Positions 5,033 through 44,900 of a stretch of DNA of 64,000 nucleotides are shown here, piece after piece. Below the pieces are notes generated by a model. The model was not told the origin of the DNA. It ran no database searches and saw nothing but the letters and a program-made list of their open reading frames with translations. The stretch is from the NCBI GenBank assembly GCA_047495785.1, contig JBLDXI010000007.1, positions 4,464,001 through 4,528,000 on the forward strand, in the 5' to 3' direction. Position 1 is the stretch's first letter, and each line of letters starts with the position of its first letter. Origin of the DNA: Lepidodermella squamata (taxonomy: Eukaryota; Animalia; Gastrotricha). A program made the translations under genes and the position numbers.

Positions 5033-7913
5033 AATGATGTTTTCACGCTCTGTTCTCGCTTCTGTTATAAGCTGGGAAGAGTTCAATGCGACCAATGCCA
5101 CCACGTCTAGGTTCGGTTTCAGCAGGTATATAACAGAGAGCAAGCTGGATCAAGGAACGAGGCAGCTGAAAATCCTGTCTTTTGTGACGTTTTCTGCGAA
5201 GTACGAACACCTGAGCTCGGGGCCCATTGGTGCATTAGCTCAAATCTCAGCAATTGATCGGCTAAGGCTAATGTCCAACTATTTGCCCAGTTATCAGTTA
5301 GCATTCGAGATGATCGATGATCAAGTAAGTTTGCTCTTGTAAAATTCTTCCCATTGAAACACAAAAATTGCTGACTTGGCAGTGTTCCAGCGAAAGGGTG
5401 GTTGCGAAACTTACAGATACGATACGAAATATGGAAATAAACTCAAGCAGTCTACCAATAGCTCTCTTGCCAGAGTGTTGCGATATGGCACATAGACTAG
5501 CCTCCCAAATTCTACGCGCGAACAACTATGCAACAGTAAGAAACTTCAAATCCTCCTATGTTATTTGGAAATGACTCAATCTCAATCGCTTCTCTCTTCA
5601 GATATCTGACTTGAGCAATCACAACAAACATCGCGATGCCGAAGCTCTTGTAGATTTTCTGATATATTTTAACTGGAGAAAAGCAGCAGTCATAACAGAT
5701 CTCGGAACGGTTAGTTCGCAGTGAAAGTTTCGAATCTCTTTTGTCACCACTGATTCGCCCCTTTTAAGGATTCCGAATTCGAAGATGCTTTACTGCGCAA
5801 TGACTTCCATGTTTTTGCAGCAAAAATTCCTTGGATTGATTTGGTATCAACTCGTCAAATTTTCGAAGACGTCAAACAAGCACAGCCCTTCATTGTTATT
5901 CTGGATACATTCAACGCACCGCGATTAGCTTGCTGGCTCCACGAATTCGGCCTATTCGGAGCGAATTATGCGATTTTTTTGAATATACGCAATTCGTTCA
6001 CAGAGGCTACTACTAAAAATCCAGACTGCAGTCATGAAATGCTGATCGAAGTTCTTAGAAGCGTGATTGTTTACGGGGAGAATACATGGGAGAATTCTCC
6101 AGCAAAAGGCAGTAGATTTGACTCCACCGGCTACACTTCGAAGGAGCTAAACAGCAGCCTTGCTAACCAAATCAGTGGTTTCAGAGACATTGAAAGCCAC
6201 TGGTACTCGCCCTACACCTACTACGACAGGGCTCTATACCTAGGGTTGATTCTCAACGAAACTGAGAATTTACTGAATCAATGGAATCAAACACTATCTG
6301 ATTGGGTGGTGGAATCCTGGAAGTTCAAGAAAAACCCGACACAATTCAAGTACTCGGTCCAACTCGCATCTTCGAGGGTAAAATTCAGAGGATTAAAAGG
6401 TGAGACCGAGTTCAACGAAAGTTCCAATAAAACTGAGATCACACAGCCCTTAATCTTCTACCAAACAATTTTGAACGGGAGTACTTTGGCAAGGCTTCCT
6501 ATTGCAAGTAAATCATTCGAGCATCTCACCATGCTGAATCCCCCAATCTGGCGGACTGGCGACGGGAATCCTCCCTCGGATTCTTGGACTACTATTGAAA
6601 TGAAGCAGCCTCCGCTGTCCACAGCAGTTAACGTTGCTCTGAAAAGCACGGCTGCCATCACATTGGCCTGTATTCTCGGGGCTGGATTGGTCTCGTACTG
6701 CAGCCCTAGGTTGTTTGGAAATGGGAGAAGCCGGCTCAATTCTTTTGACATCTTCATTGCCGTTGGAAGCGCAACAATGACGTGCTCTATCGCTATAACT
6801 CCATCAACTACTGCCTCGAGCCTTCCCATCATTTGTTCGTTCATGGTTCTAACCCTATTCCTCGGCTTTTCAATGTCTTTATACTCTTTGGTTTTGAAGA
6901 TAGATAGAAGTTATAACTTCATCCTAAGCCACACTCCTTCGACGAGAAGTTTCAGGAAAAGGATATCTAGAAAATCTCAGGTTAGAATCGCTCTACCTCC
7001 ACCTGAACAAATTCCCAGTCTCGAGTCGAATCAGAGATCCGGTCGAACGCCTTCAACGTTGAATCAATCAACTCAAGAATCTAGGGAGTCCTCGGTGCAA
7101 GCTCCGCAAATTCAAAACGGACTGGAGAAATCGGAGGGAAAACAAGTACCCATGTACGAATTGAGCTCTCTCAATTCCGAAGGCTCATCGGTCCGCCTCA
7201 GCATCCTAAAAGAGAATCCTCAGATATCCAACACCCCAAGCGATTCGAAAGGACCTTCCCGGGCCACCCTGAGGCAAATAGCTGAGACGAATCCGCTGAA
7301 GAAGGCAAAATATCAAATCATGCTCTGGACCGCCTTTCAAGCCCTGTTGGCCATAGCTATCCTCAGCCTGTCTCCAATTGAAGAGGATAAGGCGCTGCTT
7401 GGCCAACTCGCCGTTGGATCAAGAACTGGAGTCATCCAGCAATTCGTGCGAATGCAGTGTTCAGTTTTCAGATCTTCATTCTTCGGCTCGCAAGTCACTT
7501 CTTTCCTCAGTTCTTGCGTGTTATGCCTACACATTTGCCTGATCTTGAAAGGGCTCTACTACACCATTCTTGCTTTACCGGTAAACTCATTTAAAATTTA
7601 ATTTCGTTGCGGTCAATCTTTAATTCTTTTGCTCAGGGTTCGACAACTCGTAATTTGGCAAGCCAGTTGAAGCGTGTGAAACAGGCGTGCCTCGCTATAA
7701 TTGGCGAGATTGCTGTGTTTATAGCTGGCCTGCTTTTCCTCAAGCCAAATATCAACGATCCACACTTAACTCTAATAACGGCTTCCGTAGTCGCCATCGC
7801 AATCGTCTGGATAAAGCTAGGTCTCGTGCTTCTCCCAAAAGTGTGTTTAATCATCATTAAAGTAATCATCAAATTAAAACATATTCAATCTACTCTGCTT
7901 TCAGATGATTTGA
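5033..7913 (+). CDS. Class C GPCR, GABA-B-receptor-like (ANF/Venus-flytrap ectodomain plus 7TM), spliced; ends approximate
   Basis: Exons read LKILSF...YLPSYQLAFEMIDDQ|CSSERVV (ANF domain start), VDFLIYFNWRKAAVIT, VKFRGLKGETEF, WRTGDGNPPSD, then hydrophobic helices (SRLNSFDIFIAVGSATMTC, ...KLGLVLLPK). GT-AG introns link ORFs 4977, 5368, 5841 and 7607. Confidence 0.7.
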
Positions 7914-14448: not shown

Positions 14449-15551
14449 CTATTTGTTCAGGCTATCAGGAGCACTGCCCCACGAGTTGGCGGCCGAAGAG
14501 CCTCCCCAGCCACCGGCACTTGGAGATCCACTGCCTCCAAAGCCACTGCTGGATCCAGAGCCGCCACCAAGGCCACTGAACAAGCTGCCGAACAGGCTGG
14601 CAGACGAGTCCGCCTTCGGGCACGATTCGTCAATGAAATCCTTGAAGTCATCCGCCAGTTCGCAATCCTTGTCAGCATTGCACCTGATCGGGGAAAAATC
14701 AAGGCTCATCGTCGAATTTCACGATTTTACACAAACAACAAACTTGTCATTGCAGCAAGTGCAGACCTTCATCGTGCCTTTGATGGTCTTGATCGGGATG
14801 ACAACCATGTTCTGTGAGCTGACGCAGCCAAACTTCGACGAGTCAGCCGCTGGTTGACATAATCAATGAAAATAATTATTCGAATCGGCAACTCGCGAAA
14901 CTTACGGCCCAGGCTTGTCAGTATGCCATCGATGTCTAAACCATCAAACACGCTCGATCCAATCGAAGACGGGTCCGCGGCAGCTTTCGTTGTGGTCGTT
15001 GCCGCCTTTGTAGTAGTCGTTGTTCCTGACGCTTTCGATGTTGCTCCGGCTGATTTTGTGGTCATTGGCATTGAGACCTTTGAAACCATGCCACTGGTTG
15101 CGTTCGGCTCGGCGCACGACCAAATGTTGACGTTGAAGCCAATCGGGGTGCTTGCGAATGAAGCCGGCAAATCGCTGGTAGAATTGCCAGCAAAGTCCGA
15201 GAGTGACGCTTTAATTCTCACCGAGATTCTCTGCAATCGGGAATTTCATTTGAGGACTTATATTTTGGTAAATGAAGTTATTATTTACAATGCAAGCATC
15301 GCAGTTATCCTGGAGGACGGCGTCTTTCGGCAGGGTCGCATTGGCTTCGAATTTGATGGATCCGCCGAACATGAGGGCGAACATGGAGGACATGACCTTG
15401 TCCTTGCTCAAATCTGGCATAGCCGTGGCGTTGTAGCATTTAATGGCTGGAAATTAATCACTTTTTTTACCAGCAAACCTACGAAAAATCAAAATTGCTC
15501 ACCTGCGGCGCCTTGAAAGGCAATCGCGGATAGAATGATTGCTGAAATCAT
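14449..15551 (-). CDS. Secreted cysteine-rich Ly6/three-finger-like protein, paralogue 3, with Gly/Ser-rich tail (spliced)
   Basis: MISAIILSAIAFQGAA|..KCYNATAMPD...NCDAC; WSC; Thr-rich linker; FGC...VCTCCND; CNADKDCELADDFKDFIDESC followed by a G/S-rich tail. Confidence 0.75.
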
Positions 15552-16057: not shown

Positions 16058-16699
16058 CTAAGCAAGCTTCTTGTAAAGGCCAGTCAGCGCCCCAGGACAG
16101 CCTTTGAAGGACCCACCAAATTCGTCGAAGACCACTTCAGCGAAGGCTGTGAAGCCCAACTTGTTGGCGTAAATGTGCTGTGCTGTCGATGATACCGTCT
16201 CGACCGTTATGAACTTGAAACCCTTCAGCCTAGCATTTTGAACGGCAAATTGCCTCAAACGAGTGGCTACGCCTTGCCCCGAGAATTCTTTCTTAGTTGC
16301 GCCCATAGTCAAATGAGCAATTCGGCCCTTCTCAGCTCGCAGTTCGTCGGGTAGATGTTTGCGAAGCTGGCTAAAGGCCGGTTGAAGCGGGTGCTTATCC
16401 CAGAACTCAACCACTTTTGTTGGATCGTCGTGAACGTAGGCTTCTGAAGTTTGGCAGTGAATGACGGCTATCATTTCGCGTGTCTCTTCGACTTCGGCGA
16501 ACACAGGCAGGCCACTGTCGGTGCCGGCAAGTTTGAACAGCTCGCATACCAAACCGTGGAAATACTCGCGATTGAATCCGGGATGGTTTTCCATCAAATG
16601 GGCTGTCGTGGCTTCGACACTGAGAAACTGCTCAGCGAGAAGCTGAATGGCTTCTTCTTCGCGATTTTCCGGCAAAACCCGGAATACAATGGCTGACAT
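16058..16699 (-). CDS. GNAT N-acetyltransferase, invertebrate arylalkylamine N-acetyltransferase (AANAT/Dat)-like, copy 1
   Basis: 213 aa, intronless; acetyl-CoA motif A HLTMGATKKEFSGQGVATRL; AR-KGFKFITVE; KLGF; N-terminal QFLSVEA resembles the FF.DEP motif of insect AANATs. Confidence 0.85.
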   Translation of the reverse strand: MSAIVFRVLPENREEEAIQLLAEQFLSVEATTAHLMENHPGFNREYFHGLVCELFKLAGTDSGLPVFAEVEETREMIAVIHCQTSEAYVHDDPTKVVEFWDKHPLQPAFSQLRKHLPDELRAEKGRIAHLTMGATKKEFSGQGVATRLRQFAVQNARLKGFKFITVETVSSTAQHIYANKLGFTAFAEVVFDEFGGSFKGCPGALTGLYKKLA

Positions 16700-18436
16700 A
16701 GCTTCAATAACGTTTTTTAAATACTTTTTTGTCGAGAAAAGCAAAGCAGATGCGAGGCGAGATAAATAGATGGATGTGAGCAAACTTTAGCAGCAAGCGT
16801 TAGTTCTGTGTGACATTGTGGAACCACTGGTAAGTTGAACCTTGGCGCGCACACTGATTGGTCAATTTATCGTTGCTAATGACTCCGGAATGAAACATGA
16901 AACATTTCGTCGAGCGATCCACTAATAAATTATTTTATATTTATGGAAAAAATGACCTTGCCACACCGTCTGCCCGGTTTCCATTGACCACGAGCGTAAA
17001 CTCCATATTAATCGTGGTAAATTGCTGCGGCAAAAAACACTTGTTGCAAAAAATCTTATGGATCGCACGACAGAACGTTTCATCCGGGAGTCATAGCAAC
17101 GATCGATTGACCAATCAGCGTGCGCATTGGATTGGACTTTTAAGTGGTCACACAATGGACATTTTGCTTAGTCAATATCAGCTATCAGCTGCCAGGCAGT
17201 CTAAATTTATCTTCTTATTAAAAAAATTAAAATAATGAACGCTCTTTTTCTACACATAGGGAAGTTAATAGTAATATTCTCACCAGTATATAAAGTATTT
17301 ATATTATCACTATTCAACTTACCGCATGATGTGTGTGTGTAGAAAAAGACGTTTATCATTTCTCAGGCATTTTAATAATTTAAAGACTAAGCAAAATGTC
17401 ATACAAACGTCACTTATTATAAATCAATTACGCTGGAATATCAGCGACATCGAAAACCTTTGAGACGCAACTTGGTTAAGCGCTTTCCAGATCGAGCTAG
17501 CATTCTTCATACCACCGGCTTTTATTTCACATCTCAATCTATTGTTCTACACATGTATAAAACTTATCAGAGCAACTATAGCGGAGTGCGAAAGGTGTAA
17601 ATCGTAGAATTCAACGACTAAGATCAAGCTTCACCGGTCAGTGAAAATATCCATCGAAATAAGGGCCGCATCGCCATGATTTTATGACTAATTACATAAA
17701 TGAATGCACAAGAGCGAAATAACATAAAGCTGAAAGCTGAAGTCAGCATCTGTTTGATGCTAGCGTTTGGAATGCTAAACGATGTCAAGTTCAAATGTTG
17801 AACTCCAGTGTGTCAACTTTTTTGAAATAATACATATTGCTGCCATTCGCTCATTTCGGCGAATTTTCTCAAGTTTGAACATAATTTTTAAAGCGGTAAT
17901 CGCTGCGTTTATGTGGTTAAAAGGATTTGACGTAGCTTTCGAAAATAGGTTGCGGTTTAAAAAATTAACGACTCAGTTTCTTTATATAATATCGTGAAAC
18001 AAACGGATTTCCATTAAAATAGGGGCAAACAATTCTTGCGCTATTTCCGCTTTCGGGATGATTAAATCGTGGCTTTTTATGGGGAAATTTTATAGCCGGA
18101 AATCAATTTGATAAAAAACCTCTGACCATAACCTTGAAAACAACCTTTATTAGCTACAAAATTGCATTCGAATAATAATAGAAGAAAGTTTTCCGTTTTT
18201 TCTCTCTCATCGCTTAGCCATTTTGAAAGACATGTCAAAATCCTTTTAACCACTTAAATGTAGCGATTAGAGCTTTCAAAATAATTTGAAACCATGGAAA
18301 GATTCGCAAAAATGAGCGAATCGTAGCAATTTATAACATTGCAAAAAATTTCGTGTATCCTTTCTAAACAGCCTATAAATAGTAAAATCGCCGGCTCAGA
18401 CCTAGTCTTTGGCTATAAATACCCCGGACTGATTGT

Positions 18437-20303
18437 TCACATTTCGGCAACGCTGTAGGCATCGCTTAGGATAATATCAGCAAGTTCTCGGATGACGTTC
18501 CAAGCAAAGTCCACGTGAGACTCGTTAGAAGCGAAGGCACAGATAGCGAGACGTATCAGGATGAGCGATCTGAATGGCAATCTAAAGATTAAACAACTTG
18601 AATGCATAACTGGATACTCTTACTTCACTTCACATGACACTAGATAAATTCGCCCATCTGCTTGGATCGCTTTAAGAAGCGCCGTTGTCAGAACATTCGA
18701 CTGCGCCAAGGTGGCGGCTCTCAGGTAGAAAGTCACCAATCCCATGCGAACCTTCGCGCCGATCGCAAACCGTTCGTCCTTGCGTACCAGCTTCTCAAAG
18801 TACGCAGCCATTCTGACGTGATTCCTGATATGTGCCTGTAATCGAAGAGCTTTTAAACGATACCTCAACCTTATGCTACACAATAAACCTGGATCCCCCG
18901 AACACCAAAAATGCGCAATACAAAAAAGACTTTCAGTGACCTGAATCGGCGGCCCAGATGGATTTCCCTGTTGAGAAATACTTTGTTGAATCCTACGAAA
19001 CACATGTGCAGAAACTGCTTACCAGTGACGATATTCCGGCATGCTTCCGCCTCCAAAGTCATGTTTGAGGTAATGCGGGTCGACAGCGAATGCCTCCTCC
19101 TAAACCAACAAGAGACCAGAAAGTGTTGGAGTTGAAATTTTCAAGTAATTAATACCAGTAAGGTTGCATCTTTGTACCACATGGCGGAGCATTCAAATGT
19201 TGTGAGCATCCACTTGTGCAGGTTGAAATTGAACGAGTCCGCAAATTCGACGCCATTCAACAGGCTGCGGAATTCAGGGCAGCAGAAGGCACTTCCAGCA
19301 TAGGCCGCGTCAATGTGCAGCCATAGAGGTACTTCAAACTCATTGTTGTAGGTTTGAATAAACGGCCCGATTCCGGCCAAATCGTCAAAGGCACAGGTGC
19401 CAGTTGTGCCGAGTGATGCAACAACGTAGAAAGGGATGAGACCTTCGCCCACAGCTACAGCGATCGCGGTTTTCAGAGATTCGGCTGTCATGGCGTTTTC
19501 ATTGTCACTTTCAACTAAGATGACGTGTTGGATCCCGCCTAGTAACGCAGCTTTTTCAACACATGAATGAGCCTGGTCGGAACAAATGACGACCAAACGG
19601 TCCAAGATTTCGCCGCGAGGGAAATTAGGCCTTAATTCAGCCATTCTAGCCAACACGCGGCTTCTAGCAGCTAGTAAGGCTAGAAATAAGGCTTCGCTAG
19701 CTGAGCCATACAAGATGCCACCTCCCTTGCCACCGCTGCTGAATAGAAAATGATCCGGAAGATTCAGCAGTTTAGCCAACCAGTCCATCATCACAGTTTC
19801 GAGCTGTTGAAAAAGTGTTACTGGCTTCTTTATGAATAAAATGTGTTACCTCAGTAGTTATTGGGCACGATGCATAGGTAAGAACGATTGACCCGAGGCA
19901 GTTTGCTAGCATGTCAGCGATCAAGGAAGGAGTAGAAATAGCGACAGGGAAATAGCCGAAGAACCTGCGGATTAAAATTGAATCCCATTGAAGCGAACTA
20001 TTTCAGAAAAACTACGGTAATAACCTCGGAGAATGCCAGTGCGTAACGTTTGGCATAATTACTTTATTTACGTCTGCCATCACTTGTTCAAAGCTATCCG
20101 GCTCTTCGGGGACTTGCCGAGGCAGCAGTGAAGCAAGAAAACCCGGATAGTTATCGGTTCGAGAGGCCAATCTGTATATTTGAATCGTATTATAATGGTT
20201 AATTGTCGCCTGTTCAAAATCACCGGTTTTCGATGTTACAGAAGTAATCGGCCATGAAGTCGACTGCTTCTTTTCCGCGTCTCCGGAATTCTTCAGCATC
20301 CAT
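18437..20303 (-). CDS. PLP-dependent aromatic L-amino acid decarboxylase (DDC/TDC/HDC family), spliced
   Basis: MDAEEFRRRGKEAVDFMADY; VTHWHSPRFFGYFP; GGGILYGSASEA; SDQAHSCVEKA; LGTTGTCAFD; WLHIDAAYAG; PLP lysine in FNLHKW; LGRRFRSLK; final exon LIRLAICA...AWNVIRELA. Confidence 0.95.
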
Positions 20304-21335
20304 TTCAAGTGCAACTGTTTTTTATTGAAGATATATAACAAATTGAAGACGTATCGGTGACAATTTCCGTGATAGCTATATTACACAAATCGCAAGTTAA
20401 CAATTGAATCAAGGGCTAATTATTTTCCGGCAGAATGGTGTTGGGCAAGATGTAATTAAAACAGGAAACATGATGACTCTGAAGTGGTCTTCTTCGTTGT
20501 ACGAAAAGAAATATTCAGATAAAACAAGATTAGTGAATATAAAATGCTCTACTGTTTAGCTGGGCTTGAAGACTCATTTTCTCTGTATTGTCTCAGCTAT
20601 ACAAAATAAGGCGACTAAAATGATCGTTATACTAACTGGAAGAATAAATTCTTGTTGTGCTATAGCAACTGGGAAGAATTATTCACCGATCACACATGAG
20701 TATCACGCATGTTTATTCGAACGCAGCTGAAAATGCAATTTTAGCCGGAGGAAATAAATGGAAGTAGGTTCGTATTTTCACACAAGATATATAATTCATG
20801 GCTTGGTCCGTTTTCGTAGCTTCAATTTTTGTGACAACTGCGATGAAAAACCGCTCTGACAATCAAGGGCTACGTTAGGTCACACAATCAGGGCACATCC
20901 TTGGGTCCAGCGATGGTTTCTAATTTCTCTTTGTCCCTCTTTGTCGTCCCTTTCTTTTGTCAGATAAATTCTCCAGTGAGCCTCCTCAATTGCGTCACCT
21001 GCGCCTCACAACTCACTCTGATCGAGCCTTTATCTTTTCCTGTTATTGTTGATTATTTAATTGATGTGGGTTGCCTCTAAATTATTGCTGAAAAATGTGA
21101 AGGAAAGTGGCTGGCTAATAAAGGATTTTCGCTCTTTTTCGTTCTAAAAAACAAGTTAGGATAAGATCGTGTTAACATCTCAAATAAAATGCATTCACAA
21201 GAATAAAGAACAACCGAGATTTACTGCATTCAAGAAGTGGTGAGGGCTGCATTGGACAGTGGAAAGAATCAAAATTACTTCAGCGAATTTGGTGTTTAAT
21301 CTGATAGCGCATTATTTGGCTGCTTCATGCTCGAT

Positions 21336-21977
21336 CTAGGCAAGCTTTTTGTAAAGACCATTCAGCATTCCGGGGCAACCTTTGTAGGGCCCACCGAATT
21401 CATCGAAGACCACTTGCCCGAAGGCTGAAAAACCCAACTTGTTGGCGTAAATGTGCTGTGTTGCCGATGATTCCGTCTCGACAGTGATAAACTTGAACCC
21501 CTTGAGCCTAGCATTTTCAACCGCGAATTGCCGCAAGCGAGTCGCTATTCCTTGTCCCGTAAATTCCTTCTTCGTTGCGCCCATAGTCAAATGAGCTACT
21601 CGGCCCTTCTCAGCTCGCAACTCATCAGGCAGAAATTTGTGAAGCTCACTAACGACAGGTAGAAGCGGGTGCTTATCCCAGAACTCGACCACCTTTGTTG
21701 GATCGTCGTGCACGTCGGCATCTGCAGTTTGGCAGTGAATTACGGCTATCATTTCGCGTGTCTCTTCGACTTCGGCGAACACAGGCAGGCCACTCTCGGT
21801 GCCGGCAAGTTTGAACAGCTCGCGGACCAAACCGTGGAAAAACTCACGAGTGAAACCGGGGTGGCTGGCCAGCAGATGGGCTGTGGTGGCTTCGTAACCG
21901 AGAAATTGTTGAGTGAGAAGCTGAATGGCTTCTTCCACGCGATTTGCGGGCAATACACCGTACACAATTGTTGACAT
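21336..21977 (-). CDS. GNAT N-acetyltransferase, AANAT/Dat-like, copy 2
   Basis: 213 aa, intronless, colinear with and highly similar to the 16058-16699 copy; motif A KKEFTGQGIATRL. Confidence 0.85.
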   Translation of the reverse strand: MSTIVYGVLPANRVEEAIQLLTQQFLGYEATTAHLLASHPGFTREFFHGLVRELFKLAGTESGLPVFAEVEETREMIAVIHCQTADADVHDDPTKVVEFWDKHPLLPVVSELHKFLPDELRAEKGRVAHLTMGATKKEFTGQGIATRLRQFAVENARLKGFKFITVETESSATQHIYANKLGFSAFGQVVFDEFGGPYKGCPGMLNGLYKKLA

Positions 21978-23210
21978 AGCGTCAAAAACCTTTTTAAAAG
22001 CCTCTAATTGTAGAGAATGCCAATAGGATGAAATGCAAAACAATCGCGAGACCAAATAGAGTTAAGGGAGAAAACGTTAGTAGTTAGCATAGTTCTCACC
22101 ACGTGCTTAGTCAATATCAGCTGCCGGGCAGCGAGCCTAAATTTAGCTGCAAATAATTAAAATTAAAATAATAAACGACTTCTACATGCATGCATGATGT
22201 TAATAATAATACTTAATTGTGATAATAAAAATAATACGATCGTGAGAATATTATTATTCTTATCGCTCGCTGTATTATCTTACGTATCCTCCTATTATCG
22301 TCACGTGTGAGGTGTGAGGTGCCGAACGTGAGCTGCTTCCTCGTCATTTTTCGTCAGTAGCGAAAGATACGAAAAAGAAAGAAGGTAAACAGCAATTTTT
22401 CGGATCGAATGGCAGAGTCTGTCTCGAATCCGCGGTGATCGATAGTTTCTTACTTCGAGTTCAAAGCCCAGTCACTTCTCACTTTGGCCAGCTTATTAAA
22501 AACTGAAAGGTTAGCCATGGCGGAATCAGCACTCTGTTTAATGACGTTTCGCAACGGCTTACCAATCCATGCCGTGCACGTCGTAAGTACATGAGTGCGC
22601 ATTGAAGCGATTCCAAGCCATGGTCAGTTTTCAAGGTGACAGCTGTGTGTGCAGGGTGCGTGGTGTGATTCGTCCATGGAGCATGCCCATGTCCAAGAAT
22701 TGCAAGTGAAGAGAAGTTAAACCTGAAAGTCAGTTCATCATCGACAATAAAGCCCAGATCTATTATATGCGCTACTTACAGATCGAAAGTCTGCGCGTCC
22801 GCTGAGAGAGTAAGACCTACTTGAATTGTTGTACAAGCGATGAAGGACGGCACACTTGTCGAAAGAAACCAAATCGCTTACCCAGGCGAAGAGGAAAATA
22901 ACGCGTTATCGACATGTAGTAATTTAATATATACCTATACCCGCACAAAAGCATGCGTTCACATACCTGTAGTTGATGCAACGTGCATACCACAACTGCG
23001 GCTGGTGCTCGCGTGGCTACCGGTGGCGGCATTGTGAAGCTGGTCGAGGTGACGGTGCCGGCCGGTATCGTGATTGTTAATGAGCGCAGCTAATTAATGC
23101 TGACGTCAATGGTAACCGGCCGGGGGCGGCAGCGGAAGGCATCATCCGGGAAGACAAAAGAATGCACAGATGTTTTGGGATTGAAATTTAGGGACACTTA
23201 TGGGCATATT

Positions 23211-26032: not shown

Positions 26033-27952
26033 ATGGAGATCAACGGTATTTTCAGCGCGTTCAATCCATTGCTGTTTGGCAACATTTCAAAATTACATCG
26101 CCAGTCTGATGGAAAAGAATATCTTGCGAAGAAAGTATCTAAAGACGCTCCGCGATTCAGCGAGTTGTCGCTACTTGTTTCGAACGCCAATAAAATTTCG
26201 CACTCTAAACTCGAAACAACTTTTTTCCCGATTTTGGGCAAGTAGTTCACCTTGCTTAAATTCGTGGATTGAAATTGGAATATTTGTTGTAGATGAAGAT
26301 TGCTGTGGACTGCTGTTTGAAATTAACCCACATGGGCTCATGACAATGAAGGAGCTGATTTCCAGCCGTAATGGCGTTCAGTTCAAAGAATTCCAGGCGC
26401 TTCGATGGGCAACTGATATCGCTCTCGGCTTGACGTTTCTTCACGAGAAGAACATAGCCCATGGCCTCGTGAGAAGCGAGGTTAGGCGTATGAGTTTTTT
26501 GTTCAAAATGGCGGCTAAGGTTTGTTTTGCATTGGACAGAGCATCCATGTGATAAGCGAAGATATGCTGAAACTCGCCTTCTTCGGCCCTTCGGACGTTT
26601 ACGAAGAGTTGGCTCCCACTGTGAAAAAATTGCAGCGATTTGTTGTAGCTTCTTTATTCTAGCAGGGCGGATTTATCGACTGCCTCAGCGCAAGACTTGC
26701 TAGCATTCTACAGCCACCGAGCACCTGAGCTGTTCAAACCAGCATCCGCAACGAACCGCTTTAAGGCAGACGTCTGGGCGTATGGCGTTACTATTTACGA
26801 AATATCCACCCTAGCGCTACCAGTAAATTGTTGACCAATTTAAGTGGGATTCGTGTTTTCAAAATGCCTTACTTCAGTTTACTCCGGTTTCCCCGACGGA
26901 CATCACGATAACTGACGTCGAAAATGCGTATCTTCGCAACACGCCGTAGGTATGACTGACAAATCTGTTGCGAAATTAATTTGACAACAAACAGGTGGAA
27001 GTACACATTTGAAATGCCGAAACACTGGAGCTCAAGTTTTCGCAGCCTCGTCGGTCATTGCCTGAAACAAGACCCGGAAAGGCGCGCCGATATACGAACA
27101 GCTTTATGGCATCGATGCTTACTCCGTTCAATTCTTGATCGACCAGATTCGGTTCAAGCTATTTCTGATTTTTGTGAATCCAGTGTAAGACAAGGCTCAA
27201 ACCTCTTATAGCTATGTAGCTCCTCATCTAATTTATCATTAGGTAGCCGATGACAAGATCATTCCTGGAAATCGTTATTTGTCCAAGGTTTGTAATTTCG
27301 CTATCACTGCTCGCCAAATTGGTTCTTATTCAACTAGGAATTCTTCGCCGCTTGCATCGGCAAAGACGTCGAAGTGCTCGACCTGTATTTGAGTGATTCA
27401 AAGTGGGATGTTCTGTGGCTGCTCAGTCGGTGTTACGCGCCTTGGCATGGAGAACACATAGCTGGCTATCGCATCTACCCTATGCAATCCTGCCTGCACT
27501 TCGTCTGCCGTTTCGACCTGCCTAACAATCTCGAGAGAATTCTCGCGGCGAAAATCAGATTAGAGCAGAAATTGAATGGCAAGACGAAGATCGAGGCTGT
27601 TGAGGAATTGCGTGAACTGCTGAATTTGCCAGACTACACCGGCATGCGGGCTATTCATGTCGCGGCTTTGAACGGCCATTTGCGATGCGTCGAATTACTC
27701 TGCGAGTTCGGCGTGGAGTCTGGCGAAGTTCTGGCTGATATTAACGTGAAGTCGAATCGCGGCAATACAGCGCTGATGCAAGTTATTGATGGAAGCTGCA
27801 GCAGGGCAGCTGATGTCGTGGGCTACTTGATTTCGAGGGGGGCTGATGTGAACCTTAATAATCAGGCTGGACAGACTGCGCTGCAATTGGCGAGGAAAAA
27901 TAACATGCATCATATTGCTAGGATGCTCACTGAAAACGGAGCAACGCAATGA
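26033..27952 (+). CDS. NEK-like pseudokinase with C-terminal ankyrin repeats (spliced)
   Basis: Kinase subdomains EYLAKK, LTFLHEKNIAHGLVRSE, LKLAFFG, HRAPELF, KADVWAYGVTIYEI, CLKQDPERRA, then ankyrin repeats (GMRAIHVAALNGH, GNTALMQ, GQTALQLA). Confidence 0.8.
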
Positions 27953-29880: not shown

Positions 29881-30312
29881 TTTTGTCACTCTACTTGATT
29901 TTTTTATGTTTAATAAATTCCAGATACTTATACGCATAACGGATGCTTTAGAATCAATTTCGGGCTGGGAATTTTTATAATCTTTGTATTGATCCTCTGC
30001 GTCAGTTCACGAAGCACAGGGGTGGTAAAACCACAGGGGGGCCCTTTGATCATAACAATTTGGGCCCTAGAATACTCCCCAGTTCGAGGAATGCTCTGCG
30101 CAGAATCTTTCGATTGATTAATGTCCTGGAGCCAGAGTGGCCCGTCTAAAAAATGCCCTAAAAATGCAAACTCAACTGCAGCATTGGCTGATAAATCAAA
30201 GATTTTATTCCTAAGTAAAATTCAAGCCAGTGAACTCAATGGAAACGTTAGAAGCAAGAAACCGGCAGTTTTCAGTCAGTTCATGAATTTGTGAGAGCAC
30301 TTACTGCTTTTT

Positions 30313-32921
30313 TCATTTGGTAATGTTGTATTTCCGCAGAACCTTTGCCACCTCTTCCTTGACCGAATCCTCAATCTCCTGGTTAGCCTTCAATTCTTCG
30401 ACCATAACAGCATACGGAGACTTGCCATTCGTATCCAACCGCGTTGAGTCTGTCGTCTTCAACCCTAACAAGAAATCCAATATTTCCGCCCTGCCGTGTA
30501 GGACAGCCAGGTGAACAGCAGTGCGGCCTCGGCCGCGTTTCGGATCGTTCGTGCGATTGCCCATTGTTGAATCTTTGTTAATCAGCGTCTTGACTACATC
30601 GAGGTGGCCCATGATGACGGCGTAGTGAATCGGCAGGTTGCCAAGTGATTCATCGCGTGCTTCCACATCACAGCCGCCCATTTTAAGGAGCGTTTGAACA
30701 GTTTCAGCGTGACCTTCAATAGCAGCTAGGTGCAACGGAGTCCGGCCAGCTCCATCAACAGGATCCGGGTTAACCTCCAGAGAGAGCAACTCAAAGCAAA
30801 CCTAATTACACAAATTGATTGTTGGCACATGTTTTGCATGGACAATTGGAGGTTAATTTTGTTACCTCGGGATGGCCACTAGCTGCTGCGACATGAAGAG
30901 GCCGATTGTGAACCATATCCTTCGCTTCTTTATCAGCGCCGCCAACAACCAGCGGCTTCACGAGTTCGTGCTGGCCGAACTGGCACGCGAGATGCAGCGG
31001 CGTCGAAGCTGTTTGCACGTCCCTCGCATTCACATTCGCCCCACGCTTCATGAACAGCTGGACAACCTCGAGCCGGCCGTTCTCCGCGGCCGTATGCAAC
31101 GGCATGCGACCGAGCTCTTTACTATTCCTTGCCTCGATTTCCGCGCCTTTGTCCAACAAAGCCGCCGCAGCTTCGACTTGGCCTTCAAACGCTGCCGTAT
31201 GCAATGGCGAGTCGCCATCGTTGTCTTTAGCTTGAAGCTCCGCCCCTTTCTCAAGTAACACGTTGATAACTTCAGCAGAACCCATGTAAGCTGCGAGATG
31301 CAGAGCCGACGCCCCCATTTGGTCTTCTTTAGCCTTGATCTCAGCCTTGGAATCAATGAGTAGACTAACCAGGTCTGGACTGCCCCTTTCAACCGCGAAA
31401 TGCAACGGCGTTCTACCCTGTTGGCCCTTGGCGTTTACGTTAGCTTTTTTGTCAATCAAAACCTTGGCCACGTCAGCCGATTTCGCGCAATGTAAAGGCG
31501 TATCTCCGTTTTCATTCTTCGCGTCAACTGGCACGCCCAAATCAAGTAATTGCTTCGCAACTTCCGGCCAGTTGAATCGAGCAGCTTTGTGTAGAGGCGT
31601 GTCGCCAACTGTAGACGCTCGCTTTTTGTCGTCTTCATCCTCGGGAGCAGCTTCGTTCTCAGTATCGTCGGCCGTAATCTCATCCTCGATGCTTTTTGCT
31701 GGCAGCTCTTTCCCAGCGAGAACTTCAATGTCATTTTCGACAAGTTTTGCGATACTCGAAATTCTTTCGACTTTGCCGCGAGTTGCAGCATCTAAAACAG
31801 CTAGAGTCATTCGTTTCCGGCCGATGTCTTCGTAGAGCGCCGTGATGGATGGCCGTTTGAATGGCTCAACGGTCATCAACATTTCGATGAGTTTGAATAT
31901 TTCCGGAGAGTATTGATCTAAAATTTCCTGTTCGATAGGTTCCCGCTTGCCCCTGTAAAGGCAGAAACAAGAATGTGAAATATTGCGATTGTTCCGTCTT
32001 TAGCAATGATAGTTTTTAATTATTGTAAAATAAGAACTTTCAACTTACGACTTGATAACCTCCATTGTTTTGCTCCAATTTTCATCTGCCGGAAACTGGA
32101 AGAACGTCGTTTAACATTGACTAAAATCCCCATCGTGAACCTTGAAGCAAACTTACCGGGTGTTTGAAAGTCACCAGCTGATACAAAATAATTCCGAGCG
32201 CCCAGATGTCAATTTTGTTGTCGTACGCCGGAAGTGGGCTTTTCTTATCCTTGACTGGCGTGAAAAGCTCTGGCGCATAATGGCCAGCAACTGGCATGCT
32301 GCTCGTGGCTGAAGTTGCCATTTGAGTTCGATACTCATCGAATATCTTCGGTGTTATCATATCGGCTAGTTTAAGGACAGTTACTCCGTCAACTACAACG
32401 AAAAACACGTTCTGAAAAAATGAAGCCAGAATCTCGAAAACTGGACACTCGAATTTAGAAATTACGGTAGCTTTTATGTTCCTATGGGTTATTTGCTTCT
32501 TCAGGTGGAGGTACTTCGTCGCGAGAACCATTTGAGTGAACCAGTCCAAGATGTAGTCTTCCACAAAATGCTCGCCATTACGTTTTTCGATGTTTGAAGT
32601 CAGCGTTGGACCTTCTACGTACTCTCGTTCGACGTATAGAAGCCCTTTTTCATGCCAGCAGCTGTAACTAGCAGCTAAGTAAGGATGCTGAAGACTTTTC
32701 AAGGCTGCGATCTCTTTCACAGCTTCTTCTAGGTCTTTCGGCTGCTTCGCCTTTGGAAATATTCGGTCTACATTCGATTCCTTGATCACGTACAGCTTGT
32801 CGGTCTTCGCCTCCGTGCCTTTCCTATAGCCAACATGGGTTTTGTTGCCAGCTAGCAATTGGCCGGTTGAGACGGTTGCAAGGCAAGATTTAACGTTGAA
32901 TTTTTGGGCTAAAGATGCCAT
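30313..32921 (-). CDS. NEK-like (pseudo)kinase with about ten C-terminal ankyrin repeats (spliced)
   Basis: YVIKE, EIAALKSLQHP, EYVEG, EDYILDWFTQMVLATKYLH, HRNIK, YAPEL, KIDIWALGIILYQLVTFKHP, MLMTVEPFKRPS, then canonical TPLH ankyrin repeats. Confidence 0.9.
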
Positions 32922-33580
32922 CGATACACTGCAAGTGCAAGTTGAGTGCAAACTTGAGTTTTGTGCTCTACCATTCCTTTCTTTTTGAGGGCTAATTCAA
33001 CGAGGCCTATCGATTTGTTGAGAGCGTATTTTGCACCTCTATCTAACACCCGATATTGCATTAAAGATTAATATATTAGCGAATAGTTTGGTATCAATAA
33101 ATTAGGAGGACATTCTAATATACCTCAGGCAAGTTAAACATTTCAGTGATGCTGGGAAGAAGAATAAATATTGGCATCGTTTTCTTATCATATCTCATAA
33201 CTTTTCACCTGTAAATGCGGAGCTCTGTGATCACAGATTTCAATATTGGAATGCCGCCGTTGATGCCGCCTAACATAATCTTCGTATTGATGGAAAAATA
33301 CAAATGCATGTGATTTCATTATCCAAGATTGATTATCTAAGATTGCTACCAAGCGTTTCGCTCAACAGATTTTGCAACGAAAATTTCGTTGTTCATATTT
33401 TTCAAGGTATTTTTTTAAATCAATCCAAAAATTATTAAATTCTCAAACATCTCAAGCATATTTTTCGCAAAGCGGCTGGAAGGACTCGGAGAAGCAGTTC
33501 GACGCAACGAATTTGCCACTCGGAAGCATCGAAACACCTGTTAACAGAACGACGCGTCATCGGGAATCGTAATCCTCCTG

Positions 33581-35513
33581 TTATAGAGTAAACGTACAAA
33601 ATTTGCCGTTACCAGTTGCAGCGCCCGCGTCCCACAATGGCCCGGTGCCGTCAAAGTCCTCGTTCGTAATATACGCAAATTCAGTGCCTGCGAATCTTTT
33701 GCAGCCCAGTGGCGCTGCATTTTGGCTCGATGTCTAGCCGAAAGTAAAAAAATAGCTTACATAAGACCAATTCTTCCATGTTAAGCAGAAATTTGCACTA
33801 ACCCCTTCATAAAATGGTTTGATTGTCGCTACCATTCCATCGTAATCAGCCTGTGTTTTGACAATAGGGGCTCTTCGGTTGGTCCCAGTCCCGGGGCATG
33901 TATCGATTGCGCTCTGGCCGACGGTATTTCGCACGGTTCCAAAAAGTTCACCCTTCAGAAACAAAAGACTAGATTGCTCTTAGTGGTTATCCAGTGGCAA
34001 CTGACAGTAACGCTGTCCTGGCACACACGTACAGGGTCGAATTGATCGCTTCTAATGAACATGATTCCAATCGACGATCGCCGGGGATTGTACAAGAAAT
34101 CGAGATCTACAGAGAGAAACAAAGGTATAGTGCACGGAAAGACCGAGTTACTCTCAAAGCCTGGTTGCAAGCTTTCCCTGGAAGTTGGAATTGCAAACTA
34201 ACAAATAGCTGAAGTCGTGGGAGGGCTGCTTTGCGCGATCAGAAACGGCGAAGTTAAATCAAAGAGCGTGCCGTCGAGCCAGCGAAAGCGGGACACAATG
34301 CCAATGTAAGATTGCTTGGCTCCGGCGACAACGATGGCTTTCTCAACGTCATCAGTCGTCTTGATAAGCGCAAGCCGGGAATTCGGGTTGGCCGTGCAAG
34401 CCGCGGAGGCTTTCGGCCAGGTCACTGCGCTGCTTGATGACGGCAAGAAAAAACGAGCTTTTCGAAAAAACATGAGGAATTGCAAGGAAAGAATTACAAG
34501 AAAGATTGCCAACTTGCGACTCCACAGTTTGCCGATATGAAAAATTGTGGGCAGGAACACGTGTTCAGTGCTATACAAGTTCCGCCGTTAAGACACGGTC
34601 TTGCAGCACACAGATCTGATAAAGTAAAATGTAACATATTCCAAATTACAAAATGTCTGAATAGGGTAGGGGGAATTTCTGATTCAGGGTTAGAGGTTTT
34701 AGAATACTCGTAAGATTCACAACCCGTGCGTAAGAAATAGGTTTCGGGATTTCTAGACATGGCCTCTCAAACTGGTTGACCTTGAAACCATTCCCCAAGA
34801 AGCCGAATCTCACAATATGTTGATGAAGACGTCAGACTTACTGGTGCTGCAATCTGCGCCTGTGTAGCCAGTTTTGCATACACAGACATTGTCTGCATTG
34901 CAGACGCCGTCGTTTTTGCATGCACAAGTGCCGCAGTCAGCGGTTGTCCAAGGCGCTGGGCAGACGCACTGTGAGGTCGCATTGCAAGTGCCGTCATTTT
35001 TGCACTCTGGATTACACTGAAAAAACAACGGTCTTCAATTAGTTCCGAAATGAAAGACCTCCCAAGGTTCCCCATGAGAAACAAATTATGAATTGTTTGA
35101 TCTTAAATGATAACTCACTCTGTTTTGCTTGCTAGGGGGAAACGCGGGAAGGGCATCGAGGCATTCACGCTGGGTAGCATATGTCTTCGCAGAATTCACC
35201 GTCTGAAATTATAGCATGAAAGATCTGCTAAGGTGACTTGTTTCTGAATAGCAGACCCGAAATCCATCCATTTTCATGCAAGGATCAGATCCGAATGTCG
35301 TTGTATAGCACAGCGTCGTAGTTGTGGCAACCTCATAACAATGCACGTAAACCTTGAAATTAAATGCAACTGCAATTTTGTGTCGGAAAATGATGTTTGC
35401 TTTACTTTTTGCGCTGCAGTGTTCGTCTGCGTGCTGCATGCAGAAATCAGGCCGAACAAGCCCGTCGACAGGACGCACAACATTTGTCCTAACATTCTAG
35501 TTATTTTATGCAT
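33581..35513 (-). CDS. Secreted EGF-repeat and C-type lectin domain protein (multi-exon; boundaries approximate)
   Basis: EGF exons CNPECKNDGTC...CVC, CKNDGVC...GYTGADC, CLNGGTC; CTL-like exon TWPKASAAC...LALIKT...YIGI..FRWLDGT; signal-like N-terminus. Confidence 0.7.
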
Positions 35514-36262
35514 TTTTCGGTTCTTTCTCTCAAAAAAAAGAAAGATCACAAGCAGTTTTGTTTGAGCGACAACACGTGGGCTCAGCTTAGGCTAAGCGCG
35601 GCTCCTTTGTTTTTTCTCTCACCTTAAGTCGCTTAACTTTTGTTTGATTTTGTTTGCGTTCATAATGCGCCCCGGTGAGTGGAGATTTATTCACTTAGTT
35701 CGCCATCCACAGTTGTTTATAGCTCAGAAGTTTATTTTTAAAACACAATTCTTGGCAAAGGTGGAGGATAACTTTTACGTGGAAATAAATAGGAATATAC
35801 GAATGACGACTAATTCGACTAAGGTCAATGACGTATAATTATTTCTCACTTTAAAGTCTGATTGTAATAGGTTATCGCTTATCCCTTTTAAAAAGCGATC
35901 AGACACGCATAAACGTTGATAATGATATCAATGAAAATTAGAGTCGCAGCCATGTCGACGGCTCAAGTGGCTGATATTACGTACTTGTACCAGTTCATCA
36001 TTTGAAACGAGACCGGCTGAACCCTCGTCGGACATTGCCGTGCGCAAATGATCATTTCATAGAAGAAGCGTTTTTAGTTTTTAGCACCGACAGCAGCTGA
36101 ACCTAGTCGGCTTACAACTGCAACGCCTGCTGCGATGATTCTGGAGCTCTTTCCAAAGCTTGACATTGAACCATAGTCAATGGCATCAGCGCCCCGCAAA
36201 AAAACTGGCCTGTAGAAATCTATCTTTGTCAATTTTAAATGATCACTGTTCAGTTTTAAGTA

Positions 36263-41974: not shown

Positions 41975-44900
41975 TTACATGGCGATAATCAACGGGCAGG
42001 CGAGGAGGGCACTTGCAAGCAGCCAAACATGTAACCGCGCCCCAGAGTCGCCGGCTGATTTTGCGTCAGCCTTACAAGACGGAACCGTGCTGTTCCACGT
42101 GCCATCCGACTGGCAGATGATGGTCGCATCGCCTTGAAGGGTGAAACCGGTCTTGCAGCCGAACTCAACTGTCGCATCTAGCAGCAAATCGCCATCGCTT
42201 TTCACCACAAACCCATTATCGGGCGCCTTCACATCGGGGCATGTTATCAAAAGGCACGTCGGAACGGAACTGGTCCACTCGAAAGACACTGGCAAGCACG
42301 TGATCGAGCTGGAGCCGACGAGTTGGTAGCCGCGCAGGCAGCCGAACGTCACGTGGCTGTCCTCGAACGAAGCCGCGGTCGCTGATGCAATGAAGCCATT
42401 CTCAGGCGGGTCCAACGAATCGCAGACCGGCACCGGTTGGGCGAGGACTTCAACCGTTTTGTTAAACGCCTCCTCGACAGCTTTCGTTTGCGCGGCGAAT
42501 TTCGAGTTGCCGCCCGTGCTTTCGTAGTCGAACAGGCACTCGGTCGAAGTGCCACAAAGCGAGACCGCCTCTGCGCTAGCAGCTGGCTGTGATAAAGTTG
42601 GGGCGAACTTGTCGTTTCTGAAGCTGTCATAGGACTTGCCCTGTTCATACGTGAACATCGTTTCCGGCTTTTCCACAATCCACTTCATGCCAAAGTCGTA
42701 GTGAACGCTCGCAAGGTCGTCGCGGGATATCGACAGAATTTCGCCAGTCGGAGTTGCGAAATCGTCCTCCGGCTTGCCATTCAAATTGCCGAGCAGTCCG
42801 CTGATGCTAACCTTCCCTAATAACGATTTATCGGCGGAGGCGGTAATTGCCAGTGCGGAGTCTGAAGCGGAGAATGTGAAAGCGAATCCGGATTTGAAGG
42901 AGACAGCGATCTCTGACAGATCGGCCTTGACAACGCGAACCACGGCCGTCGAATCGTCGAAACGCTGCGTGAACAGCGACGGGTGGCTCAGGTCGATGGA
43001 TTCGCCGTTGACGAGGACAGTCACGAGCTGGAACTGCGACAGCTGCACCTGAACCGAGGTCGAGCCTTGCCGCATGACAAATGCGCTGAACACGGATGCC
43101 GTCGGTGGGCTGATCGGCTCCATGCGTGCCTGCATGGCAAAGTCGGCGCGAGATTGCGGGCGGACCATCCAGAATTCGCCGGCGCCGTTGAATGTGTACG
43201 CGAGGCCGTCGAAGCTGAGCAGGTGCGGGTCGCCACGGGCTGCGGCGCTTCTCGGCGGCTGGTAGCCACTGCAGTCTGACGTTGGGCGTTTGCTGAAGTA
43301 GGGCGCACATGAGCTGGGGACGTTCATGATATCGGATGGGCTGAAAATCTCGGCACGGCAGCAGTAGGCGCGCGGAAGGATGTGATCGTACGCGAACTCG
43401 TACATGAACTTCTTGCCAAAGAATTTCGCGATGTCCCACTCGATGGATCGAACTAAACGGCTTGGGATGTAGGGCGAGCCGCCTGATGTGCCAACGATAA
43501 CGCGACCAGCTGCATCGTAGGTCGAAATCTAACAGACACAGTGAACATCATCAAAAGATCTGAATTACAAACCTGATAAGCCCCGCGCGAGTCTGGGTTG
43601 GTCGATCGGTAAGTGTAAGTGGCGTCATGATACAACTCGCTATACTGCGGCTGTTCCATTGGCATGTAAGCTGGGTCGCTCTGCGCTTGGCTAGCCAGAG
43701 GCGGGCACGGCAGGCGAGACCCTGGTCCGTCAGCAGCGTAGAACCACTCATCGCACTTTTTCTCGGACTCGCGCCTGCTCAACAGCGGCAGCAGGTCGAG
43801 GGCAGTTACGCCCTTGCCGATCCAGTTGCAAGCTGTTTTCGCGACTTCGTAAGCTTGCAAGACCCAACGCGTTGAGCGTTCATTCTCCGCGAACACATCG
43901 TCACGAAGAAGATTTCGCGATCGACAGTTTGCGAACAGTTTCTTGCCCGTTACAATGTCCCAGTACATGCCTACTGGGTCTAAAATGCGGCAAACGTCGT
44001 TGACGCATCGCAGCGATTTCGTGAACCAGTTGCCGGCTCGAGACACGCGCGTGTTGTCCGTCGCGTTCGCTTTTATGAGGGGCGCGGTGATTCTGAAGGT
44101 CAGCAAACCACCGGCCAATTTCGGATCCAGCCCGACGTTGCTCACATTTGCGACGAAATGCCCGGAATTGTTGACGCCGGCGAAAACGTCGTGAATTGTC
44201 CACTCGGCTGTTGTTGTGTCCATCGACATCACCTGGATGTCGACCGTCGCAGAAACATTCGCGAAGGCACCATCGTCCTGTAAGTTGGCCGTGTCTCGAA
44301 TTGTGCTTGGGTCCCATTTCAACTCGTGAACGAAATAAGTGTCTTGAACCGCCAGCGTTTTTGAACTGATCCCAGGAGCTCCCTGAACAACGAGGAGCTG
44401 CGACGAGAATCGCACCTGCTGAACGGCCTGTTCGAACTCAGACTGCGTGGTGCCATTCGCCGTTTCATTCTCGTAGAAAAGTCCGACGAGATCGAAGTTG
44501 ATGCGACCATCTGTGTACAGATACGGAACAGTGCATAAGGCTGTTGGGGTGTCCAGAATCTCAGCGATAGTCGCAATGGACGAAAACGACGAGTTAAGCG
44601 CATCGTCGTGGAACGTGCAGAAGTACAGCCAATCGTCGTTGAAGCACGGACCTTGAATCTGCAGCGTTGACTGGGCCATGGCATCGACGAATGACGGTCT
44701 CACGACGAGTTTCGCCTCAGCCGAGGCATTGCATCTCTCCACGGTGATTTGACTATCGATTCGGTAGATGAACTTGCCGGGCGAGCCGACGTTCGACTTA
44801 TCGTCGATGTTCAGCATCGCCGCGGTGCAGGACAGGTCTTTGACGCCTTCGAACGGTTTGCCACCGGCGACATCAAAGCCGAACTTGGCCGGTGTCGATT

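Follow-up and report, generated by a model that had tools for sequence, protein, structure and literature searches.

A DDC-type decarboxylase gene between two insect-type N-acetyltransferase-like paralogs in the gastrotrich Lepidodermella squamata: a plausible two-step locus for N-acetylated amines

In bacteria, fungi, and plants, genes whose enzymes act one after another in metabolism often lie next to one another; animals rarely show such an arrangement. To our knowledge, the Ddc gene cluster of Drosophila, which is among the closest described systems, contains no gene for a dopamine N-acetyltransferase. This cluster, on chromosome arm 2L, consists of closely linked catecholamine-metabolism genes around Ddc (PMC4624176). 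The gastrotrich locus described here resembles it in that putative amine-metabolism genes are linked around an animal Ddc, whereas the fly cluster is much larger and is an arthropod feature. A literature search found no description of DDC-AANAT linkage in animals, although absence from such a search is not proof. For the individual enzymes, the closest described counterparts are metazoan DOPA decarboxylase/AADC (pig 1js3, Drosophila 3k40) and the insect-type arylalkylamine N-acetyltransferases (iAANATs; Drosophila Dat/AANAT1, Aedes aaNAT2, and Tribolium AANAT), as well as PBCV-1 A654L, Aedes aaNAT5b/SpmNAT, and Drosophila AgmNAT, which differ in acting on aliphatic polyamines or agmatine; we know of no linkage of these last enzymes to an aromatic amino-acid decarboxylase.

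The window analyzed here (the whole stretch of 64,000 nucleotides) encodes, on its minus strand and in the sense of transcription, an acetyltransferase (GNAT2, 21336-21977), a DDC-type decarboxylase (18437-20303), and a second acetyltransferase (GNAT1, 16058-16699). The three genes are co-oriented and span less than 6 kb (16058-21977), with the decarboxylase bracketed exactly by the two GNAT copies. GNAT2, which is insect-type AANAT-like, and its paralog GNAT1 are both intronless and encode 213 aa each, and the decarboxylase gene is intact, with 8 exons encoding 500 aa. The spacers measure 1033 nt (GNAT2-DDC) and 1737 nt (DDC-GNAT1) and contain transposon-like repeats. A preliminary description had placed a DDC-family decarboxylase between two co-oriented AANAT-like GNAT paralogs within 6 kb, and all three genes are found as placed; both family assignments also hold, the first by the Pyridoxal_deC domain, the PLP lysine, the His192 and Asp271 equivalents, the loop tyrosine, and an intact frame, and the second by profile, fold, and language-model features. 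No additional GNAT or DDC copy or relic is present in the window. A survey of long ORFs, in which small exons could be missed, revealed neither a tyrosine hydroxylase nor a transporter next to the three genes; the neighboring long ORFs are ankyrin or kinase genes, or have no Pfam match. We give a probability of about 0.5 to the reading that the intact DDC-type paralog and the two old GNAT paralogs form a two-step locus leading from amine to N-acetyl-arylalkylamine, expressed as separate transcription units.

The decarboxylase gene model has canonical GT-AG introns of 42-60 nt, with 7 introns in 1.9 kb. The exons were searched singly and were joined only for stop count and GC3; once joined, they form a single open frame of 1503 nt with one stop, which is terminal. 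All exons lie on the minus strand, and the N- and C-terminal ones align to DDCs by tblastn. Exon 1 (20224-20303), with its ATG at 20303, matches DDC N-termini at 59-67% identity in tblastn. Exon 2 (20025-20171) follows from the gene model and tblastn and covers positions 1-42 of the Pfam Pyridoxal_deC profile, and exon 3 (19850-19964) is supported by the gene model and tblastn of DDC N-termini. The central exon 4 (19156-19803) encodes the PLP-binding core, and matches Pyridoxal_deC at 1.7e-72 and pig DOPA decarboxylase at 2e-73; its identity to vertebrate and insect DDC is 55-56%, and matches to HDC are weaker. The local comparisons with DDCs by tblastn cover the protein matches other than those named as human. 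Aligned residue by residue with residues 114-320 of pig DDC (1js3), the segments NFNLHKW, SDQAHSC, and HIDAAYAGSAF of exon 4 contain the equivalents of K303, H192, and D271, respectively. Exon 5 (19023-19099), located by tblastn, encodes the catalytic loop, whose PEYRHW segment retains the tyrosine and aligns with the PDYRHW of many DDCs; a tyrosine in this loop marks a decarboxylase rather than an aldehyde synthase. Exon 6 (18889-18967; ORF translation and gene model) encodes HLGRRFRSLK, in which Gly occupies what we take to be the position of Ser in histidine decarboxylases (HDC Ser354). Exon 7 (18624-18835; gene model and tblastn) covers Pfam profile positions 335-374, and exon 8 (18437-18581) includes the stop codon. 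The likeness to metazoan DOPA decarboxylase/AADC accordingly extends over the core exon (55% identity), His192, Asp271, Lys303, the loop tyrosine, and the Gly that separates DDC from HDC. Judged by sequence, the gene between the two GNATs encodes a DDC-type (group II PLP) decarboxylase with a complete catalytic set, all checked residues being kept.

The two GNAT genes lie in ORFs 16058-16783 and 21336-22055, with likely ATGs at 16699 and 21977. Both pass the Pfam Acetyltransf_1 cut-off of 20.7 bits (GNAT1, 22.7 bits; GNAT2, 26.7 bits), over profile positions 55-116. Over 220 aa, the two share 80% identity (81.7% by tblastn), with a dN/dS of 0.19-0.26 and a dS of 0.38-0.49; purifying selection acts on both copies, and the duplication is old, as indicated by its dS. 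DNA similarity between the copies stops ~25 nt outside the coding sequence, which excludes a recent segmental duplication of the two regions. The segment TGQGIA / SGQGVA constitutes the acetyl-CoA motif A and aligns with the G-x-G of the family. Residue E29 aligns with the conserved E of the family "EP" motif, including in the alignment of the profile to aaNAT2. Of the DEPLN motif, the two proteins (YEATT / VEATT) retain the glutamate alone, with other residues in place of D, P, L, and N; this glutamate is the general base in iAANATs (PMC6070697).

Family placement of the GNATs comes from profile and fold comparison. A word-index search with GNAT2 returned no match at E <= 0.001, and an exhaustive search of 1.84 billion representatives returned distant relatives only (best E 6e-11; closest 32% identity), which include a giant-virus contig gene, protists, and bacteria. 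In a single-sequence PDB search of GNAT2, matches to the clade are weak (0.002-0.003); the top matches, to designer PPR proteins over the first 23 residues, are spurious and were ignored. The GNAT profile matches PBCV-1 A654L (1.2e-29), Aedes aaNAT2 (2e-27), and Drosophila Dat (2e-21), followed by Ebony and AgmNAT; 14 structures of this clade match at 1e-29 to 5e-15 over ~200 positions, and the next GNAT matches at 3e-08 over ~65. The AlphaFold model of GNAT2 (pLDDT 91.8) contains the N-terminal extension of the clade, and its fold ranks 1-21 in the PDB all belong to Dat, aaNAT, AgmNAT, Ebony, or A654L (TM 0.68-0.78), vs. TM 0.51-0.59 for generic GNATs. By language-model features, the nearest Atlas clusters consist of GNATs from arthropods and nematodes, with "aralkylamine N-acetyltransferase" among them. 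No vertebrate AANAT (VT/NV-aaNAT) chain occurs among the 40 profile matches or the 50 best fold matches. By profile and predicted fold, the GNATs belong to the insect-type arylalkylamine/polyamine N-acetyltransferase clade (Dat, aaNAT2, AgmNAT, the Ebony C-domain, and PBCV-1 A654L). They share with iAANATs the full length of a ~210-aa GNAT, the fold (TM 0.69-0.78), the profile match (2e-27 to 2e-21), the acetyl-CoA motif, and a glutamate that aligns with the general base, but differ in being intronless and non-arthropod, in having DEPLN reduced to its glutamate, and in an identity to solved enzymes of 13-21%.

Both enzyme types are probably transcribed. The evidence is X1, a run from a related strain that is probably RNA; its RNA nature is an automated guess, and it is represented by contigs only (<=313 nt here). 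Its contigs match GNAT2 (21288-21969), GNAT1 (16064-16493), and the 3' exons of DDC, where depth is 6.7 on exon 7 and 11.9 across 18430-18629, at exon 8. The contigs also show that a second strain or species has both GNATs.

In the proposed pathway, the decarboxylase would act on an aromatic amino acid and release an arylalkylamine, be it dopamine, tyramine, serotonin, tryptamine, or phenylethylamine. GNAT1 and/or GNAT2, as cytosolic, acetyl-CoA-dependent enzymes, would then acetylate this amine on its nitrogen to yield an N-acetyl-arylalkylamine; E29, a conserved glutamate, is the putative general base. The three genes would act as separate transcription units rather than as an operon. Adjacency and enzyme classes are observed, and the consecutiveness of the steps depends on the predicted GNAT substrate; we infer the substrates, metabolic coupling, co-expression, and a physiological role in amine inactivation or as a source of tanning or signaling precursors. 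The mini-pathway put forward in the preliminary description is partly supported, by a complete DDC, GNATs of an AANAT-like clade, co-orientation within <6 kb, intact genes, constraint on the GNATs, and probable transcription. Its co-regulation, its amine substrate, and its role in tanning, signaling, or defense would be predictions, and the data give no support to a polycistronic transcript. If the coupling is true, the locus would offer a compact and experimentally tractable pair of decarboxylase and acetyltransferase from a phylum whose biochemistry is almost unexplored, would extend the insect-type AANAT clade well beyond arthropods, and would point to N-acetylated monoamines (for inactivation, tanning, or signaling) in a spiralian meiofaunal animal. 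A broader reading, which we consider quite unlikely, is that this lineage, probably gastrotrichs, repeatedly assembled modular clusters for catecholamine-derived products (NAT-DDC-NAT here), which would be held together by selection as true biosynthetic gene clusters of an animal, supplying bulk N-acetylated arylalkylamines that would tan cuticle scales, egg shells, or adhesive, as an N-acetyldopamine-type sclerotization independent of that of arthropods.

The best-surviving alternative, although somewhat unlikely, is that the genes are linked and not metabolically coupled: the substrates of the GNATs would be polyamines, agmatine, or other amines, xenobiotic ones among them, and their position would have arisen as a very compact genome underwent local duplication and rearrangement. 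The best match of the GNAT profile is a viral polyamine acetyltransferase (A654L), and enzymes acting on polyamines (A654L), spermine (mosquito aaNAT5b), and agmatine (Drosophila AgmNAT) match the fold as well as Dat does, with profile and fold scores equal to or better than those of iAANATs (A654L 1.2e-29; TM 0.76/0.82). In the rotifer, the giant-virus contigs, the bacterial contig, the deltaproteobacterial MAG, and Acrasis, the GNAT relatives do not lie beside a decarboxylase; counting against the two-step locus, moreover, no member of the GNAT family lies beside the DDC genes on four other animal contigs. X1 depth is also strongly different, at ~0-1.4 over most of DDC vs. 13-88 on the GNATs, and these data therefore give no indication of equal expression. 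The exact bracketing of the decarboxylase by GNAT copies on its own strand counts against this alternative.

A very unlikely reading is that a giant virus or a bacterium donated the GNATs by horizontal transfer, that they serve detoxification or another role outside endogenous amine synthesis, and that their adjacency to DDC is incidental. Such an origin would suit the intronless state of both GNATs, as against 7 introns in the 1.9-kb DDC, the lack of any relative above 32% identity among the 1.84 billion representatives, and the location of one of the better relatives on a giant-virus-like contig, flanked by genes for DNA polymerase B and RNA polymerase. However, there is no close donor (best E 6e-11), the composition is host-like (GC3 0.56 for the GNATs, close to 0.53 for DDC), and both copies, which arose by an old duplication (dS 0.38-0.49), are under purifying selection. 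Furthermore, the relative in the rotifer is an animal gene spliced from two exons, and the nearest Atlas clusters are from arthropods and nematodes. A horizontal origin would in any case be compatible with later recruitment into an amine pathway.

Least probable of all, to the point of being highly improbable, is a single polycistronic, spliced-leader-processed operon, in which co-regulation would be structural and which is in keeping with the co-orientation of the three genes, given the 1.0- and 1.7-kb spacers with their transposon-like repeats (1033 and 1737 nt), the lack of X1 contigs over 20230-21229 in the GNAT2-DDC spacer, and a candidate poly(A) signal of GNAT2 (ATTAAA, 21295-21300, minus strand) that starts 36 nt past the stop codon, with the contig match ending just beyond. 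This match ends at 21288, and 30 further letters of the contig do not fit; we infer the poly(A) tail of GNAT2 from this contig end, the tail itself not being seen.

Two repeat elements occupy the spacer between DDC and GNAT1. A foldback element (17815-18351), with 114-nt inverted arms that are 78% complementary, lies immediately downstream of the DDC stop codon. A high-copy MITE-like element (16847-17125), with 32-nt terminal inverted repeats that are 91% complementary, lies ~150 nt upstream of the GNAT1 ATG, as a neighbor of the gene and no part of the pathway; in the DNA run X2 its depth is ~30,000-36,000, vs. ~85.

Three co-oriented genes, all on the minus strand, occupy 16058–21977: in order of transcription, an intronless acetyltransferase ORF of 213 aa (GNAT2; likely ATG at 21977, stop at 21336), a DDC-like decarboxylase gene (20303 to 18437), and a second acetyltransferase gene, also of 213 aa (GNAT1; ATG at 16699, stop at 16058). 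The preliminary description, which placed a decarboxylase between two AANAT-like GNATs in the same orientation within 6 kb, is borne out, and its limits coincide exactly with the stop of GNAT1 and the start of GNAT2. A spacer of 1033 nt separates the GNAT2 stop from the DDC ATG, and one of 1737 nt lies between the DDC stop and the ATG of GNAT1. No further GNAT or DDC copies or relics were found across the 64-kb window, and no other pathway-related genes were seen beside the trio among the neighbouring ORFs surveyed. We favour, with a probability of roughly one half, a two-step locus: the decarboxylase would make an arylalkylamine, the GNATs would N-acetylate it, and the three genes would be transcribed as separate units.

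The DDC gene model, drawn by eye from the sequence and then checked by script, comprises eight exons and seven GT–AG introns (42–60 nt each), with a reading frame of 1503 nt and a single terminal stop. Exons were searched one at a time and joined solely for the stop count and GC3, and matches named as human were excluded from the local comparisons. The central 216-aa exon matches Pfam Pyridoxal_deC (1.7e-72) and pig DOPA decarboxylase (2e-73), and both the N-terminal and C-terminal exons are alignable to DDCs. Among 5.8 billion proteins, the closest relatives are DDCs of vertebrates, insects, and spiders (53–56% identity), and histidine decarboxylases score lower (45–50% identity); because none of these proteins is more than 56% identical, the animal comes from a poorly sampled lineage. 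Residue-level alignment to 1js3 locates the equivalents of His192 (SDQAHSC), Asp271 (HIDAAYAGSAF), and the PLP lysine 303 (NFNLHKW). The catalytic-loop tyrosine is kept in exon 5 (PEYRHW vs. PDYRHW of other DDCs), which predicts an amine-forming decarboxylase rather than an aldehyde synthase. Exon 6 (HLGRRFRSLK) carries glycine at the position where histidine decarboxylases have serine, a difference that we take to separate DDC from HDC.

GNAT1 and GNAT2 are 80–82% identical as proteins, and the DNA similarity of the two regions ends ~25 nt beyond the coding region. Their dS (0.38–0.49) and dN/dS (0.19–0.26) point to an old duplication with both copies constrained. Over codons 41–100 (21678–21857 and 16400–16579), paralogue dS is ~0.16 vs. 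0.45–0.65 elsewhere; gene conversion between the copies, 5 kb apart, may be one cause. Both proteins reach Pfam Acetyltransf_1, over motif A only. A word-index search gave no match, and an exhaustive search of 1.84 billion representatives returned 106 (best E 6e-11, at 32% identity), the named relatives being from a bdelloid rotifer, the heterolobosean Acrasis, a diatom, and bacteria. A 201-aa relative (~25% identity) is also carried by two contigs of other organisms (L002, 10001–10606; L003, 7478–8083), which encode DNA polymerase B and RNA polymerase Rpb1 and are probably giant-virus genomes; this relative fits the position of chlorovirus A654L as the top solved-structure match of the family profile.

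That profile, built from an alignment of GNAT1, GNAT2, and 28 full-length matches, matched 14 solved structures over ~200 positions, including the PBCV-1 A654L polyamine acetyltransferase (1.2e-29), Aedes aaNAT2 (2e-27), Tribolium and Drosophila dopamine N-acetyltransferases (~2e-21), the Ebony C-terminal domain, and agmatine N-acetyltransferase; ordinary GNATs came after the structures of this clade, at 3e-08 or weaker. The AlphaFold model of GNAT2, made from the GNAT alignment, is confident (pLDDT 91.8, pTM 0.88), and its best Foldseek matches in the PDB (21 of 21) belong to the insect-type clade, at TM 0.68–0.78 vs. about 0.5–0.6 for generic GNATs. A language-model look-up returned GNAT clusters from arthropods and nematodes, including one under the name aralkylamine N-acetyltransferase. 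Profile, predicted fold, and language model agree on placement in the insect-type clade, and vertebrate-type AANAT is absent from all three match lists. E29 of both GNATs aligns with the glutamate conserved in the family, the general base of the insect enzymes, where it belongs to the DEPLN motif (PMC6070697); the remainder of the motif is not kept (YEATT/VEATT). Judged by sequence, the window GNATs and DDC are new proteins, very divergent members of known families.

Two public sequencing runs match the window. One (X2) is DNA, and the assembly was probably made from it; its coverage is an even ~85x throughout, across introns and spacers as well, and its sequence does not differ from the window. 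The other (X1), putative RNA under a different organism code, differs from the window by 0–6%. Its contigs on the GNAT2 coding region (21288–21969) have depth 33–78, those on GNAT1 (16064–16493) 13–15, and those on the last two DDC exons 7–12, with almost no coverage of most of the remaining DDC and no contigs over 20230–21229; RNA would give such unevenness, in contigs unable to rank expression. No intron-skipping joint for DDC is present among the X1 matches listed. An ATTAAA motif begins 36 nt 3' of the GNAT2 stop, and ~7 nt beyond it, at 21288, one X1 contig ceases to match and continues with 30 non-fitting letters, an end compatible with a candidate poly(A) site of GNAT2. This second strain or species has both GNAT copies, with frames open where covered; the changed codons within the GNAT1 and GNAT2 coding sequences (13 synonymous, 8 non-synonymous) come from a partial list of differences, in which some contigs may mix GNAT1 and GNAT2.

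Two points count for a meaningful linkage: the GNAT copies flank DDC on both sides, on the same strand and within 6 kb, and the two enzyme classes carry out consecutive steps of known pathways. The conversion of serotonin to N-acetylserotonin is one such step after amine formation. Likewise, insects convert dopamine to N-acetyldopamine both for sclerotisation and to inactivate the amine (PMC4394704). The literature searched yielded no description of DDC–AANAT linkage in animals. Among known arrangements, the nearest is the Drosophila Ddc gene cluster, from which, to our knowledge, the acetyltransferase is absent. The Drosophila cluster consists of linked catecholamine-metabolism genes (PMC4624176), and the window arrangement is a further form of animal functional gene cluster, a kind already known. 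The main rival, less probable, is linkage without metabolic coupling, the GNATs acting on polyamines or other amines. The earlier label "AANAT-like" is justified as far as membership of the insect-type clade, which also contains polyamine, spermine, and agmatine acetyltransferases. No decarboxylase neighbours any inspected distant GNAT relative, and at the four DDC loci inspected in other animals, no GNAT of this family lies within 10 kb. The trio lends itself well to enzyme assays and a comparison of synteny.

Horizontal acquisition of the GNATs is conceivable for genes that are intronless beside a DDC with seven introns and that lack a close relative, but their host-like composition (GC3 0.56 vs. 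0.53 for DDC), the age of the duplication, the spliced rotifer relative, and the absence of a donor closer than 32% identity point to a long-standing presence in the genome.

An operon is disfavoured because the spacers are long and repeat-filled. The earlier pathway interpretation is partly supported, in its DDC (predicted to be amine-forming), its insect-type-clade GNATs, and their co-orientation. Both repeats lie within the DDC–GNAT1 spacer. The first, a MITE-like element at 16847–17125 (32-nt terminal inverted repeats, 91% complementary), lies ~150 nt 5' of the GNAT1 ATG; its X2 depth of ~30,000–36,000x vs. ~85x around it suggests several hundred, roughly 350–400, genome copies. The second, at 17815–18351, is a foldback whose 114-nt inverted arms (78% complementary) are separated by 309 nt; it lies immediately 3' of the DDC stop and is probably another non-autonomous transposon.

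Elsewhere in the window, 57147–61849 looks like a largely intact retroelement, with a 356-aa ORF without Pfam match followed by a 1200-aa ORF with RVT_1 (1.7e-38). Ankyrin-repeat ORFs at 30806–32951, 51894–52712, and 27374–27952, one adjoining a protein-kinase-domain ORF (32121–32951), may form a family of ankyrin-kinase genes. Long open frames at 5841–7601 (586 aa) and 43453–44937 (494 aa) match no Pfam family; the latter adjoins an ORF with VWD, Mucin-4 C8-3, and Sushi domains (41975–43405). Just downstream of GNAT1, a minus-strand 155-aa ORF (14769–15236) has no Pfam match and carries TTTTKAA repeats rich in Thr and Ala; it may belong, as an exon, to the gene of a secreted mucin-like protein.
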